A stretch of DNA of 57,874 nt from Octopus bimaculoides (taxonomy: Eukaryota): positions 83,490,156 to 83,548,029 of the forward strand of contig NC_068988.1 in assembly GCF_001194135.2 (NCBI RefSeq). The letters are read 5' to 3'. A program made the translations under genes and the position numbers. The notes beneath the pieces are model-generated. The model was not told where the DNA came from. It made no database searches and worked only from the letters and a program-made list of their open reading frames with translations. Below, piece by piece: positions 3,297 through 45,109 of the stretch (position 1 is its first letter; every line of letters starts with the position of its first letter).

Positions 3297-3697
3297 GGTA
3301 TCTTTTACTTGTCTCATTAAGGTGTAGCCATGCTGGGGCACCACTATGAAAGGTTTTAGTTGAACAGTTCAACTGCAGGACTTATTTTTTTAGGCCTGGT
3401 ACTTATTGTATTGGTGTCTTTTGCTGAAGTGCTAAATTATAGGGATGCAAAGACACCTACACCAATTGTCAAGTGGTGGTGGGACACACACATGCACCCC
3501 CCCCCACACACACACTCTCTCTCTCTCTCTCTCTCATATACAACAAGCTTCTTTCAGTTTCTGTCTACCAAATCCACTTACAAGGCTTTGGTCAGCCCAA
3601 GGCTATAGTAGAAGACACTTGCCCAAGGTGCCATGCAGTGGGACTGAACCCAGAACCATGTGGTTGGGAAGCAAGCTTCTTATCACACAGCCATACC
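3297..3697 (-). mobile_element. SINE family A copy
   Basis: Reverse complement of the 57081-57460 element. Confidence 0.85.
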
Positions 3698-21695: not shown

Positions 21696-22110
21696 ATGTC
21701 TTTTTTATCTTTTACTTGCTTCACTCATTAGACTACGGCCATGCTGGGGCACTGCCTTGAAGAAATTTTAGTCATATGTATCATCAACCCCACAGTATTT
21801 ATTTTTTAAAAATAATTTTTAATATTATAATATTTATTTTTTTAAAAAACTTTCTATCATCTCTTTTGTTGAACCACTAAGTTATGGGGATGTAAGCACA
21901 CCAACACCAGTTGTCAAGTGGTGGTCGTGGGTCAAACACAGACACGAAGATACATACACACAGATACCTGTATATGCATATATATGACGGGCTTCTTTCA
22001 GTTTCCATCTCCCAAGTCCACTCACAAGGTTGATTGAGGTGCCACACAGTAGGACTGAACCTGGAACCATATGTTTGGAAAGCAAGCTTCTTACCTCACA
22101 GCCATGCCTG
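21696..22110 (-). mobile_element. SINE family A copy
   Basis: Reverse complement match. Confidence 0.85.
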
Positions 22111-24710: not shown

Positions 24711-25598
24711 GTAACTATTTGAATATCACTCTGATAGGTTTGATTCTTTGCCCATTAGGGATTTGGTCACAAAATGAAGATTTAAGAAGCACTTCCAGTT
24801 GTAAAAACAACTGCTTCAACTAGAGTGAAAGTATTTTGCTCAATCCAGTTGAGAAACGTGATACAGAGCAACTGGAATAAATTGGAAGACCAGATTCTTT
24901 ATTGCAGAACATGCAAAAGTGCAGCAGTTAGAGTTTCATAATTTGAAAGGATGGTTTTTAATCCAAAGGCCTGAAGATCACATTGAAAAGACTGAAATAC
25001 TAATATTTCATCTTTTCATTCATTTTTATGTCCTGTGTCTGTTTTCTGTGTCTGCTATCAAGGATCAGATGAATATATTGTTGAAGTAGTGTTTTACAGC
25101 TGGATGCCCTTCTGGTCACTAACCTTTACCTGTTTTTCAAATAGGGAATCTCTTATTCCACAGATTTCCAAAGGTACAAAGCCTGCAGACGATATGTTTG
25201 ACAGGAAATGACAACAATGTCACCACTTGTAGCTCAGAAGTGTAAATGTAAACCGACACATACACACACACACACACATGTATGTATATGCAAAGAACTT
25301 CTTTCTATGTTGGTCTGGGGCTATAGTAGAAGACACTTGCCCAAGGTACGATACAGTAGCCTTGGAAGTGAACTTAACTATACAGCTATATCTGAAGCTA
25401 AAGAGCACAAATTCCCATTATCATGCAAGATTTTAATAAATACTGAGTACTTGTTACCTGCAAGGTGATCACAAAATATTTAATGTAAGATCCTTGCTAG
25501 AGGAAGGTGTCCTAGTTAATAATGGAGGTGGTTGTAGTATAATTATTACCCTTTTCAGCACTTGTCTTTCTCTCATGATTTCTTTCCATATTCCACAG

Positions 25599-25741
25599 GA
25601 TGGCCCCATGTAAAATTCCTGTCTGGAACAGTGGAATGTGTCAGACCATTACGATGGGTTATCAAGTCCAGTTCAATAGTGACTGTATGGAAGCAACTAC
25701 CTCTAAAACTAGCCTGGGCTATTTCTATACATAAAAGTCAG
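25599..25741 (+). CDS. PIF1: PIF1 coding exon (WPHVKF...QLPLKLAWAISIHKSQ; motif V)
   Basis: CACAG| acceptor, CAG|GT donor, QLPLKLAWAISIHKSQ. Confidence 0.95.
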
Positions 25742-27212
25742 GTTTGTAACTTCTATTTTTTGCTTATACTCTTTTTCTTTTCTCCACATATTTTCCATTA
25801 TTATATTATGAGTGGTGCAAGTTTGGTTTCAAAATTTTGTTCTTGTAGCTGGGATTTGTTCTTATTACCCTTCTTGATAATCCCTCAGGTATGAAGTTGT
25901 CAAACCTGATTTTTATCAGCCAGTAATACTAGAACCAAAGTTTCATACCTTGCTGTATAGTTTTTTTTTCCTTGTTTTTTTTTTTTTTTATAGCTTAATC
26001 AGAAAGTGGGCAGTCCCTCTAATCCTTAAGGGTTTCTGAGGCTAGTGTCAGGGACAAAGAGGAAGGTAACCTCAAACCAGTGGCCTGGCCTATATTCTTT
26101 TGCTTGCAACAGAATTTTTATTTAACCTCTTTTCTTATATTTATTGCATTTGTTTCAATCATTTTTGAAAATAATGATGAATTTCGTAAAATAACTTTTT
26201 CATTATTGAGTTGATCTTTATAGAATATATTAACATGAGAGTTTGATAGATTTTAATTTAGATCACTTAAAAAAAAGCAAGTTTTTATTATAGAACCAGA
26301 GAGTCTTGGGTAGGTTGGTGTCAAAAGAGTTAACTTTTAGGGATCTAAATAGTCACTCTATACACACATACACATAAATATTGTCCTGCTTCCTCAAAAC
26401 ATATCTGGTCCCTGAATGCCTTTAGTGTGGGATCCACTCAAGAACCAGGTGGTCAAATAGTGGTGTTAAATCAACCACCCAATATAGGCCACAATGAGAT
26501 TTGAACTTGGACTAAATACCCCAAGGCATCCCATTTAACACTAATAATTCCTCTTGCTCACCACTGTAACCTAGTAAGTTATTTATCAACTCAGAGAAAA
26601 ATCAAAGACCTCATCAGGATTCGAAATCATAACAGAAGTTGAAATACTCCAATGCCCTAACAACTCTGCCAATTTGTCAAATGTGAACTCGTGTCCAAAT
26701 TGTACAATGAACCACCAAAAGTGAATCTGAAGAGTTGATAGTTCAATACCAATCATCAACGGCGTTGTTTCACTTTGTTGATTATCTGTTAAATGAAGGA
26801 GAAATATTTCTAGATATGAACATCAGCTATGGGCAAAATAAGGAGTCCCTGATGAACTAACAGCCTGACCCACAGTGTATATACTCCTATTCAAATATAT
26901 ATCTCAGAAAAGTGCACAGATATTTGTAGTAAAAGGCAGCTCTGATAAGAGCATTTGGCAACTACTATTGAGCAAGAAAAGCCTTCAAGTCCTTGGCTCC
27001 CAAGGAAAGCATCAAACCTGTTGACTATGGGAGCCCTTTATGCAGTTGCTCAATCTACTAGAAATAACCAAAATTTCTCAAATCATCCTCACACCCTACT
27101 GTGTTAAGATTAGCTATTTTAGTTCTACAATAACTAATGTTAAAACAGTAGGCTCTTCACATTCTAGATTCAAATCTTGCTGAAGTTAGCTTTGCTTTTC
27201 ATTTCTCTATCA

Positions 27213-31566: not shown

Positions 31567-31924
31567 TTTAATGCAAATTGCATACAAAATAGATATGACC
31601 ATTTCTAACAAAGGTGAGAGGGTGGAACATGTTCGATGAAACCAGCAGTAAACTGCCAAGTGCATGTATGTGACAAATTGGATTGTCTACTAAAGGAGGT
31701 ATAAGTGAACATTTGCCTGGAAACAAAAATAGAGAAAATATATTAACGTCATATTTGGGATCCATTAATATTTAAATATTTTCATGATTTTCTGCTTGTA
31801 AATTTCAAAACACTACCCAGCCAAAGTAAGTAATATTTGAAACGACCTCAAACCCCAACTGCAAATCACAGGGGTTAAAGTAGATGTCTGGGTGGGAGAC
31901 AAAGAGCCAAGAGAAGTTCTTTGT

Positions 31925-32007
31925 TCACATTTGCTTGAAGTATTCCTTGCTGCCTTTAGGGTCAGGTTTCATGGTGTTACTTCCAGGCTTCCACCCAACT
32001 GGACACA
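31925..32007 (-). CDS. PRDX1: Peroxiredoxin terminal exon ([27 protein letters not shown]; resolving Cys, YF motif)
   Basis: CTTTCAG| acceptor, phase 1, TGA at 31927-31925. Confidence 0.97.
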
Positions 32008-32134
32008 CTGAAAGAGAAAAAGACTTTATAATGACAAGGAACCAAATACGATGGCACTGAAGAACCATATGATAGAAAAGCAAAGATTTCAATGCACCCA
32101 CATCACCTCTGAAACATTAATGAAACTTTAATTT

Positions 32135-32457
32135 GTCATTTGACTGCAGCCATACTGGAGCACTGCGTTTTAGTTGAAGAAATTGACCTCAGGACTTCTT
32201 TGTAAGCCCAGTACTTATATCAGTCTCTTGCCAAACCACTATGTTACATAGATGTAAACACACCAACAGCATTTGTCAAGCAATGGTGAGGGGATAAAAA
32301 CATACATACACACACACACACACGACAGGCTTTCAGTTTCCGTCTATCAAATCCACTCAAGGCTACAGAAGGTATTTGCTAAAAGGTGCCAGACAGTGTG
32401 ACTGAACCCAGAACCATGTGGTTGGGAAGCAAGCTACTTAACATACAGTCATGCTTG
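32135..32457 (-). mobile_element. SINE family A copy
   Basis: Reverse complement match. Further partial copies at about 1365, 2420, 4095, 5570, 9800, 10865, 12235, 24470, 25290, 41680, 42860, 52025, 52258, 54660, 55330 and 55545. Confidence 0.8.
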
Positions 32458-32619
32458 CATTGTAAAATTATAAAAAACATGCTAATGTTTAATTTAGAAT
32501 AAGGAAGACTTCACCTTCTCTTGTAATCATGGTTCTGACCTCAATTTTGGTACTTGCCTAGGTCTTACGAAAATTTTTAAAATACAAGTATAGGTTAATG
32601 TAATTTAGGGAGTAAAAAA

Positions 32620-33420
32620 ATTGAAATTACACTTGTAAATTAGGTAGACAGACAATTTGTAGACAGAGTTGTCTGACATAACTTATAGACAAGACAATTG
32701 AGAGATTGGACAATTTGCCAAAAAGACAGTGTCATTTTTTAAAACCAAAGTAAACATTACGAAAAATTATTAGACTTACAAATAAAAACTATAAAAAGAT
32801 ATTACGTACAATAGGTTGACATTAAAAAAGCACAAAGTTTTGTCAGTTTTACAAATAGAAATAAAGATATCACATACAATTCCTAAATTTTTCACAGTAC
32901 CAAATATAGAAACCTCATTTCTATACAGTAAAAAATTATCACCTCTGGGTGTTTTATACAATTCATCCTCATTAATAACTGGTCTTTTCTGTTACACTGT
33001 ACTTTAAGAGATTCCATTTTCAGTAAACATCCAGCAACACTCTAGAGGATATTGGAAGCTAGAGTTTCAACTATAGAGCTTGGCAATTGTTCAGCTCATC
33101 CAGCAAGAAGCTTTATTTCTTAACTTTTGCAGTGTGATTTTCAATTGGCTAGGATGTACGTGTTCAGAAGGAGTCGTGCTAATTTCAATTGCTGTCAGTC
33201 TAGCACTGCACAGTTTACAATTTGCACATCTCCAATAAGTCTTTTCTAGTTCTATCAATAATATAGGTGTACCCTTTGTATAGAAGCTTTCTGCCACCTT
33301 GTTCTATTTTGATGAACTCCATGATCGATACTTCTGCATGTCAACTTATTGTCCAGTTGGCAAACTGTCTGCACATGATCAATTAGAAGCCATTAGCATT
33401 ATCAACAATTCCAGTTTAGG
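32620..33420 (-). mobile_element. Mutator-like (MULE) remnant with FLYWCH zinc-finger
   Basis: ATG 33322: MEFIKIEQGGRKLLYKGYTYIIDRT /frameshift/ KTYWRCANCKLCSARL...SEHVHP; then KTPRGDNFLLY...IFGTVKNL; GACAA/GACAG motif arrays in opposite orientation at both ends. Confidence 0.7.
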
Positions 33421-33803
33421 AAAGTAAGGAAGAGAACTTAAAATTAGAAAATAAATGGAAACCTAGTAGGAGAAGTGACAGTTATAGTGGGAACTCTGGA
33501 CATGTTTGAGACTTTTCAATCAAATCAAGTCTAATCAGACTTTAGGAAAAGTTATTAGAAAAACTTGGCATTTATATGTAAAACTGTTTGGCTGAGGTTT
33601 AAGACAAACATGTCTGGGAAAAGTATATTGTATTGAATTCAATTATTATACAGTGACTATTTTAAAAACTGTCAAAATAAAACATTGATAGTTTAGGATT
33701 CAGGTTTATTAAACAGACTCAAACTTATCCCATTCTTCATTAAATTTTCAGCTTTCTGCTAAAACACACAATCCTACTTATATATAAGCTTCACAAGAGA
33801 TGA
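33325..33803. repeat. Copy 1 of a near-identical ~480-bp local duplication
   Basis: Matches 35406-35509 and 35757-35918 almost base for base. Confidence 0.95.
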
Positions 33804-34870
33804 CAAAGAACTAGAACAATTGGCAATTTGCTGTGCTTGAGAAAACCTGCCTAAGTAAATTCCAGGACATAAAGGCACACCCTTTATTTCCATGCCTACC
33901 TGCTTCCATGCTCACCACTGCTGCATTTCCCTCCATTCTCCTTCCAACCTGCACACAGTGTCCCTTTTGAATCTTCCCCCTCCCCCTCTCTACCCCCATA
34001 CTCCTCTGAATTGCATCCATTTGACACTGTTCAAACCTACCTCTCAACACCTTCCCGCAGTCCAACCCAAATATCTGCTCAACTAGAGAAGATCTGTAAA
34101 GGAAATGGGCAGTCTTGTCCTTTCTAAAACTTAGGAATACAAAGTTTACAGGAAAAAAACCGTGCATTGTACAGAAATGAAAGTGAACACGATAATCAAA
34201 CTACAATATTTAAAAGATGAAACCTGCATCAAGAATAGTGACTGGTAAAAGGTTGAGTGGGTGTGATGAGGCTTCCATTTTAAGGATAACCATTGGCTTT
34301 TATCTAATATTCACCTTGAGGCTGATTTAAAATAGAATTCGTCTTACACAAGTATAATTATACAGGAATACAAAATTGGCACTCATGATCTATGAAAAAG
34401 GAATTAGTAATAATGAAATATTGAACCAAACACTTAAAACAAGAACAGCTGTTTTTTATGCATGGTGGGTCTGCTAAACTAAATCACAAAAGGTTGAAAA
34501 TAATTTACCCATTAAGGATCAGGTTTACAATGAAACTACAGATTAACAGAAAAATAGTAATTTAAGCTTAATGCTGCTAAGAAACGAAAGACTAATTACC
34601 CAAAGAAAAATACTAACCACACTATAAATATATTAAATGGCCATTGTTGCTATATTATTGCTGTTAGCACACAGCAACAGTATCTATGGTATACCACAGT
34701 TATCACAGTTTAATATATATGCCACAAAGAAATGAAATCAAAATATATCCTGCGTTTTGATAATACCATATGACTTCTAATTCATAGGAACTGTGTCAGA
34801 GTGAAATGTCTAGTATCTTGCAGTGCAATCAGCGAGGGAAGTGTTTGTAGGCAAATACAAAGCAGCTTAC

Positions 34871-35024
34871 ATATTACAAGCACCACCAAATGTGACTAAA
34901 ACACGAAGTGCAAATATGGGAGAGAAAGCAGTTTCAAAGCCATCATTGCCCACAGAAGAGGATGGATAGTCATGGGCTGGACAAGCATTCAGACGTACAT
35001 GAGGCTTTTCTCCCCATCCTCTTC
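34871..35024 (-). CDS. Candidate alternative peroxiredoxin exon (GRGWGEKPHVRLNACPAHDYP...VTFGGACN)
   Basis: Acceptor TTTTTTTAACCTTGCAG, donor AT|GTAAGC, only the phase-1 frame is open, matching exon 4; no transcript evidence available. Confidence 0.55.
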
Positions 35025-35405
35025 CTGCAAGGTTAAAAAAAGTAAATCTAGTTATTTTTTTTTTTTAATTAAAAGTTGAAAATATTTCATTAAGAGTACT
35101 ATTTTAAAATAAGGTACCTTGGAGATTTCTAAGTACAGTTTACACTACATAAAGTCAGGTTTGATGATTCTAAATAAATATTGCAAAGCACAAAGTAAAA
35201 GATAGCAACTAACAAGCAGTTTAATTAGCCAGCAAATATTTTAAGTTAATTAACTTGACAATGTGCTCATTGTTTTCTATTAAAAGCAAACATTTATTAA
35301 TTCTAATAATATTTAGGAACTACATAACAAAATTAGACATTGCTTTTTCATTTCCACATAACAAAACAACTAAACAGTTGACAACCTCACAAAACTGCAA
35401 AAATT

Positions 35406-35918
35406 TCGATACTTCTGCATGTCAACTTATTGTCCAGTTGGCAAACTGTCTGCACATGATCAATTAGAAGCCATTAGCATTATCAACAATTCCAGTTTAG
35501 GAAAGTAAGNNNNNNNNNNNNNNNNNNNNNNNNNNNNNNNNNNNNNNNNNNNNNNNNNNNNNNNNNNNNNNNNNNNNNNNNNNNNNNNNNNNNNNNNNNN
35601 NNNNNNNNNNNNNNNNNNNNNNNNNNNNNNNNNNNNNNNNNNNNNNNNNNNNNNNNNNNNNNNNNNNNNNNNNNNNNNNNNNNNNNNNNNNNNNNNNNNN
35701 NNNNNNNNNNNNNNNNNNNNNNNNNNNNNNNNNNNNNNNNNNNNNNNNNNNNNNNNATTATTATACAGTGACTATTTTAAAAACTGTCAAAATAAAACAT
35801 TGATAGTTTAGGATTCAGGTTTATTAAACAGACTCAAACTTATCCCATTCTTCATTAAATTTTCAGCTTTCTGCTAAAACACACATACCTACTTATATAT
35901 AAGCTTCACAAGAGATGA
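35406..35918. repeat. Copy 2 of the ~480-bp duplication (middle is an N gap)
   Basis: Both gap flanks match 33325-33428 and 33642-33803. Confidence 0.9.
35510..35756. other. Assembly gap (247 N)
   Basis: Run of N. Confidence 1.
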
Positions 35919-37352
35919 TTCATGAAAGAACAAACTATCCTGGATATCTCATAATGCAAAGAGTATCTTTCATCTCCTTTTCTTCACCTGGTTATTATTG
36001 AGGACAGAAACTGATAATTGCATTTCAGAATGCAGCAGGATTTATGGAACAACCATTCATCCACTGACCACCCATTATAATTTTTGGTGTTCATTCATGT
36101 ACATCAAAATACATCTATTAATCTGATAACTACAGGCAAGGCTATGGTTTACTAATGAGATCTCATAAGACCAAGGCACATCAGGAGTTATTACCCATCT
36201 TGGCAAAGATCAGCTTAAATTAACATTAGCCAATGAATAAATGTTTTGTTACTGTATTACAATTTTACCCAACTACATTATGGCCTTAACTTTACTGGCA
36301 GTTTTCTACTCTAATAATTGAGCCAACTGTTAATCTTGAAATAGGCATACCTAAGAACTAAAAGTTGCCAGAAAGCCTTCCATTTGAGAGGTTTGCTTCT
36401 CAGTTACATAGTTTTGGATTCAGTGTCACTGAATAATCCTCTAAGCTGTCACTCAACGAGCTAGACATAACAGCTAAACAGCCATCAAATTACACTATAC
36501 CAGCTTAAAAACACTATGTAATCCAAGATAGCTCTAAAAAAAAGCAGGATGATCATTGTTGGATTGCCTTTAATCAGAGATCCGCTTGATCAGTTGATCT
36601 GTGGTTACACAACCACAATGGCTTATTCTAATAAAAAAATTCTATTATTATTGCCAAAGCACAAAGGGAATTTCCTATCAAATATGCACTATGGAGGAAT
36701 CTGTTCAATAATCTGACCTAGTCAAAGTAGCAGTAAAATCTTTCAGTATCAGAACAGAGCCACATACTAATTTACATACCATGTAAAATGCAATTACTAC
36801 AATTACATTCCTATAATTGCATCTCGTACAGCAGTTATTTCTGAGGAAAAAAAAATCTGCAAAGACTACCTAAGTCAAATTTAAAAGCATCAGCTCTCCA
36901 TTGAAAGAGCAGAATATATAATATTGTTTTATGTCCACTACTACTGTTAGTGTGTAGAGGACATGAGATAACAGGTTAAGGAATTTTAGTATTTCTTTTA
37001 TGTATGAGCTATGGTTTAAAGTGTAACTGCTAAGAAGCAGACTTGCTGCGTATCATCTTCAGCAGTAGAGGAATTTGCTGACCAAGTAGCTCCCAGGATA
37101 CTTTGGTAATGAAACAAACTGACCAACTTCAGTTGAGTTTCTGCAAGCAATGCTTGGAAAAATTACAAGTTCGACAGCCACTTTCTCTATACATTGAAAG
37201 TTTATTAGCCTCATTCCAGTCATGGCTATCACTTTAGTTACAGAGTGCATCTAGAACTGCATATATGTATCCTTTGTCGCTTAAGATGGCTGTTACAATA
37301 GCTAGCATATTGCAGAAATTTGAACCCTGAATATATTTTAATATATGGGTCC

Positions 37353-37356
<4 letters not shown>

Positions 37357-37412
<56 letters not shown>

Positions 37413-37461
37413 AAGAGAGAGAAAGAGAGAGAGAGGAAGAGAGAGAAAGAGAGAGAGAGAG
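37357..37461. repeat. (GA)n/(GAAA) microsatellite
   Basis: Direct inspection. Confidence 0.98.
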
Positions 37462-40400
37462 CAACTGCCAGTTGTCAGAAATGGCAGAGTTTGAAATGTA
37501 GCTTGCTACAAAATGTATCAACCACAGAAACTGGATAGCACTGTAGCACTCCCTAAAGTCACAAACACATAAAAGTTGATCTGTCACAATTCAGAAGACT
37601 CACTAAATACAGCAAAAAAGAATTAACATTTTAGCCTTTAAACTGACCATATCAGACCCAGATATGGAGCCTTTTACAACTACCTACAAAGTCAGTGTTA
37701 AAGAAAATCATAATGAAATCTGGAAACTGAGATAATGCACGATTTATTCAAAACAATGTGAATAAATAAGCATTGTATTTAACTGACTAACCTGAATGCT
37801 CAGGATTAAACCAATTCTCTCACCCATACTGTGTTGATTCAAGTTCTGAAACTTGTAGACAATATACAGACCAAAAGTTTGTGGGTAAAATTTGGTAGGT
37901 AGAGGGTACAGGTACCTATCTTACATGTTGGGCTTTTTATATTTGTCTATGTTCTATAACAGTGGTGCAACAATGAATATCAAACAAGTACCAGAGTTAA
38001 TATGATCTACTTGAAAACTACTCCAGTTGGCTACAGTCCCATGACTGAGCCCAGTAAAAGTATATGTACACTGGTTCCTTAATTACATATACAGAACTAA
38101 AATAGGGGGCTTCACTACAGACAGAACACTAACAGTGCACTATATTATGCCACATGTGCAATAATGTTAAGAGGGAAGAAAAGTTAGTAAAAAGACCCAC
38201 ACACCAACATGGAGAGAGTAACAGCATCACGTAGACGACAGTAAGGTTGTGTTTGAGGATTTATAAGGTCATCAACTAGAACAGAACCAATGCCAGTCAT
38301 TGCAATTTCATTAAAAAAAAAAAAAAAAAAAAAAGGCTAGCAGTCAGAAATTTGAAAATTTCAAACAGAAGCTGTAGAAAAACAATTTATTATTGAAGTA
38401 CCTAGTACTTTAAGGTTACTGTGATAGCTTCACTTAAAATCTGTAGTTTTCATACCTGAGGGGTGCCGTATAACAATCCAAAACAATACTTCTACAAAAC
38501 TAAACTTTATATACACATCCAGTAGTCCAGGTTTTGACATGATCATATGAGCACGATAGAAACTAGACATTTTAAAGGAATTCATATTAATGAAAATTAA
38601 GTTACATTCTAAAATGTAATATATTTCAGGGAAAAAAAAAGTTAGGATTTTTTTCTTCAAGACTTACTTTAAAGAACTAATTTAAAAGAGCTTTAGAAAT
38701 TAGAATCAAGTAGATGAAATAGATTCCAAGTATGTCTAATGCCTTCATATTCTGACAGAAAAACACTGACAAGAATACAGAAGAAGCAAATCAAAAATCA
38801 CAAGAATCAAATGTAATTCAATCCTGAAATACTAATTTTTATAAATTATAATCCTAAGCTATATTGAAGCTTTCCAAATGGTTAAGAAAGGATTCATATT
38901 TATAATTTTCCAGAAGAAAAAAAAAAAAAAAAAAAAAAAAAAAACTTAATGAAATTCATATAGTTATAGACATAAGTTTAAATTAGAATTAACAGACCAA
39001 TTTGAACTGAAATTAATCATTTTCAACCTTTTATACAAGAGCAAGTATATATTAAAAGATATAGCTACCATTGTTAATAATTAAAGAGAATTATGCCAAA
39101 ATCAAAGGCATTAGTTTTACATTAATTCTGAAACAACTGGCATTAGACATGCACAAATAGTCAGAACAACTTATTGTCAGCAAAGGCATCAGTTATAGTG
39201 AAACCTCAAAACTTAAAACTATTGAAGTTTAAACTTCAGTCAATTTAACAGTCAGGCAAATAGTATCATTCAATACATGATAACTAAAGCACAATATTAA
39301 CATTGACTTAAGTTTTCATTTTCTGTATCGCTCAGAACCTGAACAAATTCAACCATTAAGTCAACATTTGACTTGCATGACCAAATTAGTGTCGAATCCG
39401 TTTCAAAATCTTAAGCCAAACTAGAACCAGTTTACTTTACACAAATGATCCATACCATTGAGTGGCTGAAATAACTATATATATAAAAAGACCCTCACTA
39501 TGCAAAGGACAGACTCCATCTTATCAAAATCACTGAAACGAAACTGATGTAAGAGCTTAAATGGAGTAATGACTAACCAGAAAGCTGACAATAGATTACA
39601 TACAATATTGTTGAGTCAATCTTTTCTAGTGAAGATAAAAGCTTCAACAGAAAGGAAATGAGGCTTGTAATATGGGCTCACAGGCAATACAAATTTAGGA
39701 CCTCTACAACAATAGAATTGATTAATTATTTTGCCAACATATCAGCAAGCTAAAGACAGTGTTGCTAGTAAGCCTCAAAGAGAAACTTGTCCAGTGCAAG
39801 TCTTTCATTAATACCAATGAAAAAATTTGATAAAACAAAAATAGTGTATATTAAGCAAACATTATTTCACCAAGTAAATCTATAAGTATTTAAATTCTAT
39901 AGCAAGCTAAAATAAGACTATTCTGTATGAATTGCGTAATCAGGACAATTTTATCCAACGTCCTTTAAGATAGCAGCATGTGGGTCAAGGGAGATTAGCT
40001 GTTATTTCTCTTCCTTGAGAAAACAAACTTGACAACTGATCAAGTTAAGCTGCTTGAATACCAAATTGCATACAAATCTAACATCTGTGATTGATGTTCA
40101 AGCAATACTGTAACATGGTCTACAGTATTATATAAATTTGAAGTAGGAGAAATATTTACAAAACTATTCAGTAAATTTTTGGCAACTGAAAAATAAACCT
40201 CAGTAAATTAGGTATGCAATTAAATTATTTTCCTACAGAATCAAATCAACTTCAAATCAGTTTAAGTTAAAAATTTTCTAAGAGAAGGAAGGACCTAAGA
40301 AAAAAAAAATTGAAACCAAAAACTAGAAACCAACAAGTATTATAGATATAATTGCATGTTTCTTTTATCAAAGCAATCTGAAAGTAATTATACAGGATTA

Positions 40401-40568
40401 AAAAACTCGATTAACAAATGTGTTATTTTAATTCTTTAGTGACTAAACACTGCCATAAAACTATCAGAGATCAATAATTCATATTGAACATAAAGCCATT
40501 GTCAGATAATTATTACAAACATTACTGACATTCAGAGATAAAATGGAACTAAGATTGCAAGGTCTTAC

Positions 40569-40699
40569 CTTCACCGTGTTTGTCTGTAAATTGGAATGCT
40601 TGTACCAAACGCAGTGTCTCATCAACTGATCGACCAACTGGTAGGTCATTAATAGTTATCTGTCTCAAAACACCTTTCTCATCAATGATAAATAGACCC
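40569..40699 (-). CDS. PRDX1: Peroxiredoxin coding exon 4 (GLFIID...[27 protein letters not shown])
   Basis: TTTCAG| acceptor, AAG|GTAAGA donor, ends phase 1. Confidence 0.97.
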
Positions 40700-41338
40700 C
40701 TGAAAGAAAAAAAAAACCTATATAATAAATCTGAAGAAATGAGTTAATGAGTTTCTGAAACTTGCTTTAATCAAATTTATTTTCAAATGACTAATTGTTA
40801 TGTGTGGACTATAGTTACTAGTAATATGTTAAGTGAATTAATAGTTATTAGCCTGCTTTACAATCATACGAAACAAATTGGTTTTCACAAAAAAGCTATT
40901 GTTTTACTAGTCCTTTCATCTAATCATTTCCATTCAAGAAACCAATCACTCTTTAAGGAGAGAGCTTAAAAAACAAAAGTGTCAAGTCAGCTAAATTGAC
41001 CGAAAACCATTATGTCAGACAACTGAGTGAAAAAACAGAAAATAGTTTTAATGCAATGAACAAGTTCACAAGTGATTATAGGAGAGTGTGGTGGATAATA
41101 GCAGTTAAAGAAGTCTGACATAAATGGAGGTTTTGATGTGTTACAACCTGAGACCATGCTGCCTCTGAAACCACATGAGATCAATGCCAGTGTGTAACTT
41201 GGGTCAGTCTAGACTGAATACCCTAATTGCATCTAAATCAAATGACTGTAGGATCCACAGTTATACCACATTTTACACTAATTGAATACCACACCTCAGG
41301 TTTCAACACTGACCATGTATTATTAATTTGTAGGTTCG

Positions 41339-42284: not shown

Positions 42285-42407
42285 CTGAAAGAAATTCCCT
42301 CATCTTCCTTCAAACAACCATAATCTGATGCAATTTTGAGGATCTTGTCAGCCAAGAGAGGAATCTTCATTTCTCCCAAACCTCCTTGTTTCCGTGGTGT
42401 ATTGATC
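42285..42407 (-). CDS. PRDX1: Peroxiredoxin coding exon 3 ([11 protein letters not shown]...DEGISF-R)
   Basis: TTCCAG| acceptor, AG|GTGACT donor, GGLG motif. Confidence 0.97.
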
Positions 42408-43104: not shown

Positions 43105-43221
43105 CAAGCAAGATGGGAATAATGGCTGTCAGTTGAGCAAGCAACAACTTCACAGTTGATTTTTTTGAATTCTTCCACTCTGTCACTAAAGGCAGTGATT
43201 TCTGTGGGACACACAAAGGTG
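43105..43221 (-). CDS. PRDX1: Peroxiredoxin coding exon 2 (TFVCPTEI...SHLA-W; peroxidatic Cys)
   Basis: TTCCAG| acceptor, TG|GTAAGT donor, FVCPTE motif. Confidence 0.97.
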
Positions 43222-44981: not shown

Positions 44982-45109
44982 AAATCAAGTGGATAGAAGA
45001 ATAGCACCAAATATTTTCCTTTGTAGTCTGACAGTTGGATAGTTTTGAACTCACCATTAACAACAGCCATTCCTTTGAATTCTGGGGCTTTCTGGGCTAA
45101 TTTTAGCAT
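44982..45109 (-). CDS. PRDX1: 2-Cys peroxiredoxin coding exon 1 ([13 protein letters not shown]...[14 protein letters not shown])
   Basis: Acceptor TTTTTCAG before 45118, ATG at 45109, donor TT|GTAAGT; Prx1/2-type orthology to PRDX1 vs PRDX2 not resolvable. Confidence 0.95.

Follow-up and report, generated by a model that had tools for sequence, protein, structure and literature searches.

Typical 2-Cys peroxiredoxins (Prx) of the AhpC/Prx1 type, such as human PRDX1 and PRDX2, rank with the best-conserved and most plentiful antioxidant and signalling enzymes; both their catalytic cycle and how readily they become hyperoxidized are governed by the resolving-cysteine (Cys) arm and the YF helix. 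A single Prx gene can encode products with differing termini, as in the testis-specific isoform of PRDX4, possibly with differing localization. In PRDX4 and the molluscan Prx isoforms, the variation is N-terminal, is generated by alternative first exons and leaves the catalytic C-terminus intact. The stretch of Octopus bimaculoides DNA analysed here (57,874 nucleotides [nt]; RefSeq assembly GCF_001194135.2, contig NC_068988.1, forward-strand positions 83,490,156 to 83,548,029; hereafter the window) carries on its minus strand an orthodox Prx1-type gene, and the last intron of this gene contains a 154-nt segment, here called exon B, which an original prediction had singled out as a candidate alternative exon. 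Comparison with the orthologous loci of Octopus sinensis (L001), Argonauta hians (L002), and Octopus vulgaris (L003) suggests that exon B is probably a real and selectively maintained alternative coding exon of the 2-Cys Prx gene, working with a second exon of the same intron (exon A) and producing a predicted swap of the protein tail; in contrast to the N-terminal isoforms, the octopus case would exchange the C-terminal catalytic arm. The idea of an alternative exon therefore stands, but the original prediction had missed exon A, and the direct junction of exon 4 to exon B and the frame that it had proposed are peculiar to the O. bimaculoides assembly.

The host gene (minus strand, 45109-31925) encodes a 193-amino-acid typical 2-Cys Prx with 100% identity to the peroxiredoxin-1 of O. 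bimaculoides. The motifs of the Prx1 class are present as FTFVCPTE in exon 2, GGLG in exon 3, and HGE/VCPVGW...KEYF in the last exon (slashes mark exon boundaries here and below), the precomputed domains of the identical protein (P0001) are PF00578, PF08534, and PF10417 (AhpC-TSA and 1-cysPrx_C), and the canonical junctions are confirmed by transcript contigs from a close relative (L005 and L006). The four introns measure 1760, 697, 1585, and 8561 nt, so that the last one is as long relative to the others (697-1760 nt) as had been noted. Orthologous last introns are also long (~8.5 kb in O. sinensis, 8.7 kb in O. vulgaris, and 4.8 kb in Argonauta hians), and the length is therefore regarded as genuine despite an assembly gap and a duplicated block within it. 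In O. vulgaris, the Prx isoforms comprise 193, 202, and 237 amino acids, and the gene model (L003 3001-26164) reaches 23 kb upstream, where alternative first exons extend the N-terminus to 202 or 237 residues. The features of the locus, in window coordinates, are as follows.

Prx coding exon 1: 44982..45109, minus strand; begins with the ATG at 45109
Prx coding exon 2: 43105..43221, minus strand; holds the peroxidatic Cys motif FTFVCPTE
Prx coding exon 3: 42285..42407, minus strand; holds the GGLG motif
Prx coding exon 4: 40569..40699, minus strand; ends in phase 1 at AAG/gtaaga (GAA G/gt); would splice to exon A (to exon B in the original prediction)
Last Prx intron: 32008..40568, minus strand; 8561 nt including 247 N; contains exons A and B
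Exon A: 38205..38275, minus strand; predicted 71-nt alternative coding exon, 3.2 kb upstream of exon B
Exon B (the flagged segment): 34871..35024, minus strand; predicted alternative coding exon of 154 nt in O. bimaculoides vs 170 nt in the three other species compared
Site of a 16-nt deletion in exon B: 34998..35000, minus strand; after nt 25/26 of the exon, where the other three species have TACAACATAAGGAACC; shifts the conserved frame
Canonical last Prx coding exon: 31925..32007, minus strand; encodes the last 27 residues including VCP and YF

Whole-gene comparison of Octopus with Argonauta by blastn and tblastx gives matches only to the five coding exons and to two islands in the last intron, at 38296-38185 (84.8% identity) and 34999-34864 (83.1%), compared with 75-87% for the coding exons; tblastx of Argonauta against O. 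sinensis revealed no third conserved exon. Identity drops to the random background (0.55) within 25-75 nt beyond the exon ends, and ~25 nt of intron on each side of exons A and B are better conserved than the remainder. Between O. sinensis and Argonauta, nucleotide identity reaches 86% in exon A (ungapped) and 81% in exon B, with 74-82% in the canonical coding sequence (CDS), and exon B of O. bimaculoides is 98.7% identical to its O. sinensis and O. vulgaris counterparts, a value within the top 0.5% of windows in an intron with ~78% identity overall and a window median of ~88%. Of the wider molluscan comparison proposed with the original prediction, octopods including Argonauta have orthologues of both exons; tblastn gives no credible match to exon A or B in the last Prx introns of Patella, Magallana, and Solemya, which interrupt the same codon and measure 0.6-2.6 kb.

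On the minus strand, exon B reads ttgcag/GAAGAGGATGGGG...GCTTGTAATAT/gtaagc, starting with GAAGAGG and ending with TGTAATAT/gtaagc, and its splice sites ttgcag/G and AT/gtaagc are the same in four species (ccttgcag/GAAGAG…AATAT/gtaagct). The acceptor and donor at 35024..34871, the GC content (0.448 vs 0.33 in the last intron), and the single open frame matching exon 4 in O. bimaculoides (2, 4, and 0 stops in the three forward frames) were all described correctly in the original prediction; with the G carried over from exon 4, this frame translates to GRGWGEKPHVRLNACPAHDYPSSSVGNDGFETAFSPIFALRVLVTFGGACN (GRGWGEKPH…GGACN). The conserved frame of exon B is phase 0, which encodes EEDGEKSLIQHKEPVRLNACPAHDCPSSSVGNDGFEIAFSPIFALRVLVTFGGACN and is the sole open frame in O. 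sinensis, O. vulgaris, and Argonauta. Exon A (ttctag/TTGATGACC...CCATGTTG/gtgtgtggg) is kept in five octopod sequences. Its one open frame is phase 1, which matches the end of exon 4 and gives (G)TT.. = VDDLINPQTQPYCRLRDAVTLSML; the exon ends in phase 0. Its peptide across species is VDDLINPQTQPYC(G/R)LRDAVTLSML, and in the fifth octopod, represented by Logan genomic contigs (L007-9), it differs by one synonymous change. Because exon A carries the phase 1 of exon 4 into the phase 0 of exon B, it is required for the conserved frame, and exons 4, A, and B form one continuous frame in O. sinensis, O. vulgaris, and Argonauta. In Argonauta and O. bimaculoides alike, every reverse frame is interrupted by stops, and the plus strand has no splice sites at the boundaries; an antisense exon was accordingly rejected.

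An open frame in this intron is unremarkable by itself, since phase 1 is open in 452 of the 7132 AG..GT pairs that span 50-300 nt; among these pairs, exon B alone reaches its own pair of crude splice scores, and it stands beyond chance because it is conserved across species. The number of such segments and the interspersed repeats in the intron could point to a chance pseudo-exon or a transposon fragment, but the probability of this is next to negligible given that at the orthologous place in Argonauta conservation stops with the exon ends and the other intron sequence is unalignable, that self-blast finds no further copy of 34600-35300 in the window, and that an exhaustive HMMER search of 1.84 billion representative proteins with the 43-residue conserved part of the tail returned only unrelated repeat-derived matches. 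A 118-amino-acid open reading frame (ORF) at 34167..33811, which has no Pfam match, was rejected together with the alternative acceptor near 34093 that the original prediction had offered for the last junction; both are unconserved in Argonauta.

Selection figures are Nei-Gojobori estimates for O. sinensis vs Argonauta. Over the 241 nt of exons A and B (A+B), there are 42 substitutions and no insertions or deletions (indels), with 20 amino-acid changes over 81 codons. The non-synonymous (dN) and synonymous (dS) substitution rates are 0.134 and 0.455 for A+B (dN/dS, ω, 0.29; 0.10 in exon A and 0.42 in exon B) and 0.149 and 1.235 for the canonical CDS (ω 0.12), and the other two frames of the A+B DNA give ω of 1.1-1.6, so that the dN/dS comparison suggested with the original prediction came out in favour of the conserved frame. 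Exon A has 7 synonymous and 3 non-synonymous changes (1, 2, and 7 at the three codon positions). The synonymous excess in A+B is significant (p=0.0012), and random-substitution simulation gives P(<=20 amino-acid changes)=0.001. The dN of A+B is close to that of the canonical CDS, with a dS 2.7 times lower. Lowered dS from additional RNA-level constraint is usual in alternatively spliced or regulated exons. Similarly, the donors of exons A and B score below three of the four constitutive Prx donors, as expected for regulated exons. The two exons thus resemble animal cassette exons in identical splice sites at the orthologous position, conserved flanks, lowered dS, and weaker donors, with a frame that is open and under purifying selection in three species and lost in the O. 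bimaculoides assembly; they differ in that joint use is needed to keep the frame, that the last exon is read out of frame, and that they are known here from genome sequence alone. On these comparisons, exons A and B are conserved from Octopus to Argonauta as predicted alternative coding exons, far above chance.

The same depression of dS indicates constraint at the nucleotide level and may alternatively mean that the islands are conserved for a role in the RNA, either as unproductive exons that lower Prx output through nonsense-mediated decay (NMD) or as splicing-regulatory or RNA-editing-associated elements. Consistent with this, inclusion of exon B alone leads to an early stop in the three other species, the A+B frame of O. 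bimaculoides terminates prematurely, 118 nt ahead of the exon B donor, no coding isoform is annotated, and exon B contains an 11-nt perfect inverted repeat. With regard to NMD, the A+B stop lies in the last exon in the three other species. An RNA-level role is nevertheless judged quite unlikely, as A+B has stayed open for 81 codons without an indel at a canonical-CDS dS of 1.24, ω is 0.29 in one frame only with changes gathering at third positions (mostly in exon A), Rfam yields no match, the folding z-scores (-0.84 and +0.62) are not significant, and no long complementarity exists elsewhere in the pre-mRNA. A known RNA family was rejected after an Rfam scan of 31800-40800 returned nothing relevant, and the segment did not qualify as a small nucleolar RNA or microRNA; an editing-type complement was likewise rejected, with only chance matches of 9-12 nt in the pre-mRNA.

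Some smaller observations concern RNA features of exon B and the surrounding intron. The inverted repeat pairs 35014-35024 with 34955-34965 (GAAGAGGATGG / CCATCCTCTTC), so that the first bases at the acceptor pair with an internal stretch, and gives a 12-bp stem in the minimum-free-energy fold; by eye, Argonauta has a shifted 9-nt equivalent. The block at 34697-34821, 50-175 nt 3' of exon B, shows exon-like identity of 97-98.5% among the three Octopus species without conservation in Argonauta; it includes an ATTAAA in all three and could regulate the intron or provide an alternative 3' end. At 36794-36890 on the minus strand, Rfam matches mir-6130 weakly (24.8 bits vs a gathering score of 117, E 0.27), almost certainly by chance.

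Exons A and B could also belong to a separate small gene or transcript nested on the same strand within the Prx intron, in which case the match to the frame of exon 4 would be coincidental, as it would be with a prior of ~1/3. An in-frame ATG at the end of exon A (ATG TTG/GAA...) could begin a product of 59-69 amino acids, and in Octopus another in-frame ATG precedes the exon A acceptor by 25 nt, an arrangement also seen in the ORF P0121. The upstream ATG is, however, missing or out of frame in Argonauta, the acceptor AG of exon A and its pyrimidine tract are conserved, and the strongest protein-level constraint (ω 0.10) lies in exon A upstream of the internal ATG. There is also no third conserved island in the intron to serve as a first exon and no such small protein in the databases searched, which makes a nested gene distinctly improbable.

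With exons A and B read as alternative coding exons of the Prx gene, splicing of exon 4 to exon A, to the 170-nt exon B, and to the last exon would keep one open frame in O. sinensis, O. vulgaris, and Argonauta hians. The predicted product has 256 amino acids, in which residues 1-166 would be followed by a 90-residue orphan tail replacing the last 27 residues with the VCP resolving Cys and the YF helix; loss of VCP and YF and gain of a tail with a hydrophobic stretch had been foreseen in the original prediction. In order, the tail would consist of VDDLINPQTQPYCGLRDAVTLSML from exon A, the phase-0 peptide of exon B, and a short frame-shifted reading of the last exon (10 protein letters), with DAVTLSMLEEDGEK and SLIQHKEPVR as candidate tail peptides. 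Exon B enters the last exon in phase 2, and the shifted reading, which ends at the stop at 31979..31977 in the last exon as had been proposed, does not differ among O. sinensis, O. vulgaris, and Argonauta. Splicing of exon B to the last exon is favoured, given a donor conserved through +7 and the lack of any poly(A) signal within 670 nt in Argonauta. A terminal-exon model is not favoured. In it, the TAA inside gtaagc would close the ORF after NM, and polyadenylation would use a site in the intron; ATTAAA occurs 154-157 nt downstream in the three Octopus species, but neither AATAAA nor ATTAAA occurs within 670 nt in Argonauta.

If made, the isoform would retain the peroxidatic Cys and the core that forms dimers and decamers, without a resolving Cys or YF helix of its own; it would consequently act in a 1-Cys-like or relay-type manner, or pair in a heterodimer with a canonical subunit. 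By analogy, it would resemble 1-Cys Prx (Prdx6), engineered resolving-Cys mutants, and C-terminal truncations in having a peroxidatic Cys without a partner and in the loss of YF, although by sequence it is not a member of the Prdx6 subfamily. In 2003, Wood et al. reportedly found that the YF helix governs the sensitivity of 2-Cys Prx to hyperoxidation. The tail is acidic (11-12 D/E vs 2-5 K/R), and its best-conserved part is the hydrophobic stretch AFSPIFALRVL(V/T)TFGGA, 2-13 residues from the end, in which the 19-residue Kyte-Doolittle maximum also falls in both Octopus (1.73) and Argonauta (1.47). In this arrangement of a single conserved hydrophobic segment close to the C-terminus after an acidic linker, the tail is similar to those of tail-anchored proteins and may tether the isoform to a membrane or dock it on a partner. 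Tail Cys residues are C13, C44, C49, and C79 in O. sinensis and only C49 in Argonauta, while C49 is Tyr in O. bimaculoides; the best-kept Cys motif is H(D/H)CPSSSVGNDG. The motif ACPA, which the original prediction had likened to the canonical VCP, did not hold up, as its Cys is unconserved and Argonauta has NVYQ there. Searches of Pfam and the Protein Data Bank (PDB) gave no homologues of the tail, in line with the original prediction that the peptide belongs to no known family, and no paper describing such a Prx isoform was found.

A further, tentative proposal, which we consider unlikely as a whole, is that octopods have kept a membrane-tethered Prx that lacks a resolving Cys of its own, with the catalytic arm exchanged for a lineage-specific tail of acidic linker and hydrophobic anchor. 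Such a Prx would sense or relay peroxide locally, or would anchor canonical subunits through hetero-oligomers, and the 16-nt deletion would have rewired O. bimaculoides to productive skipping of exon A. Octopods would then have retained a second Prx product over what we take to be roughly 100 million years. More generally, a naturally selected splice isoform lacking exactly this arm and gaining a possible anchor would be a natural experiment on the uses of a Prx1-type core with only the peroxidatic Cys, such as relay signalling, chaperone activity, and localized scavenging. The two exons were found by comparative sequence alone and had been missed in three RefSeq-annotated octopus genomes.

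Several observations weigh against exons A and B as maintained coding exons. Among 5.8 billion proteins, a word-index search gave no match to the exon B tail, and searching with a profile of the three tails returned P0121 alone, which is an ORF running through exon A on unspliced genomic contigs. Neither exon occurs in any annotated isoform or assembled transcript ORF, and all listed NCBI Prx isoforms of O. bimaculoides, O. vulgaris, and O. sinensis vary at the N-terminus only. This negative expression result is weak: Logan sources are missing for all three Octopus canonical proteins, which means that RNA-seq assemblies of these species are poorly represented. In addition, since exons A and B do not differ between O. 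sinensis and O. vulgaris, only two deep lineages were compared. No tail Cys is common to all species. Unlike those of typical tail-anchored proteins, the tail is only borderline hydrophobic for a membrane span and has an Arg and a Pro inside the hydrophobic stretch. Finally, the window's own copy of A+B is frameshifted, and the four A+B substitutions that distinguish O. bimaculoides from O. sinensis and O. vulgaris, of which three are non-synonymous and one synonymous, all map to its own lineage; the sister lineage has none.

The frameshift results from the 16-nt deletion in exon B, which occurred on the O. bimaculoides lineage or is an assembly error, because the outgroup Argonauta has the 16 nt; exact-ORF look-ups gave no independent record bearing on it. 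As a consequence of the deletion, splicing of exons 4, A, and B in O. bimaculoides ends early at ...SMLEEDGEKSLMYV (...EEDGEKSLMYV) with a stop after 11 exon B codons. Direct splicing of exon 4 to exon B is open in O. bimaculoides only because the 16 nt lost and the 71 nt of exon A add up to 87 nt, a multiple of three, and it regains the conserved tail in frame after nine assembly-specific codons (GRGWGEKPH); in the other three species, the same junction gives GRGWGEKPHTT or GRE, followed by a stop. The isoform in O. bimaculoides is thus either damaged, mis-assembled, or made by skipping of exon A. The changes on this lineage include Cys49→Tyr, Ile→Thr, and Gly→Arg and hint at recently relaxed constraint, or at rewiring, in this species. 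Such amino-acid changes, together with a deletion seen only in the O. bimaculoides assembly and the early A+B stop, would fit a decaying relic, in which the ancestral A+B isoform has been lost through the deletion and the open junction of exon 4 to exon B is accidental and functionless. We regard this as improbable, since exon B is still 98.7% identical to that of O. sinensis, so that any loss of constraint must be recent, since direct splicing regains the conserved tail exactly in frame, and since the deletion may be an assembly error in a draft with a gap and a duplicate 400 nt away.

The gap consists of 247 N at 35510..35756 in the last intron, ~400 nt from exon B. Its flanks (35406-35509 and 35757-35918) copy 33325-33428 and 33642-33803 at 99-100% identity, so that a direct duplicate of ~480 bp, 2.1 kb apart, brackets exon B. 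At the position of the gap, O. sinensis carries ~1.1 kb of unrelated sequence. The gap and duplicated block are probably a scaffolding or gap-filling artefact.

Beyond the Prx gene, the next gene in all three orthologous loci is convergent with it and encodes a PIF1-type helicase of ~614 amino acids (PH_LRR1, PIF1, and AAA_30; L001 18813-19446, L002 13281-13835, and L003 41820-42467). In the window, the plus-strand ORF at 25562-25894 has LPLKLAWAISIHKSQ, resembling the PIF1 C-terminal motif, without a Pfam match for the fragment. The last Prx intron also carries a (GA)n microsatellite at 37357-37461, with ~52 repeats and a 24-nt higher-order period. Just upstream of the last Prx exon, at 32135-32472, lies an interspersed repeat of ~330 bp with at least 10 diverged copies in the window on both strands (66-82% identity; for example, 57442-57085, 3551-3694, 18039-17866, 21852-22110, and 16435-15934) and further copies in O. 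vulgaris, which looks like a family of short interspersed nuclear elements (SINE) or miniature inverted-repeat transposable elements (MITE).

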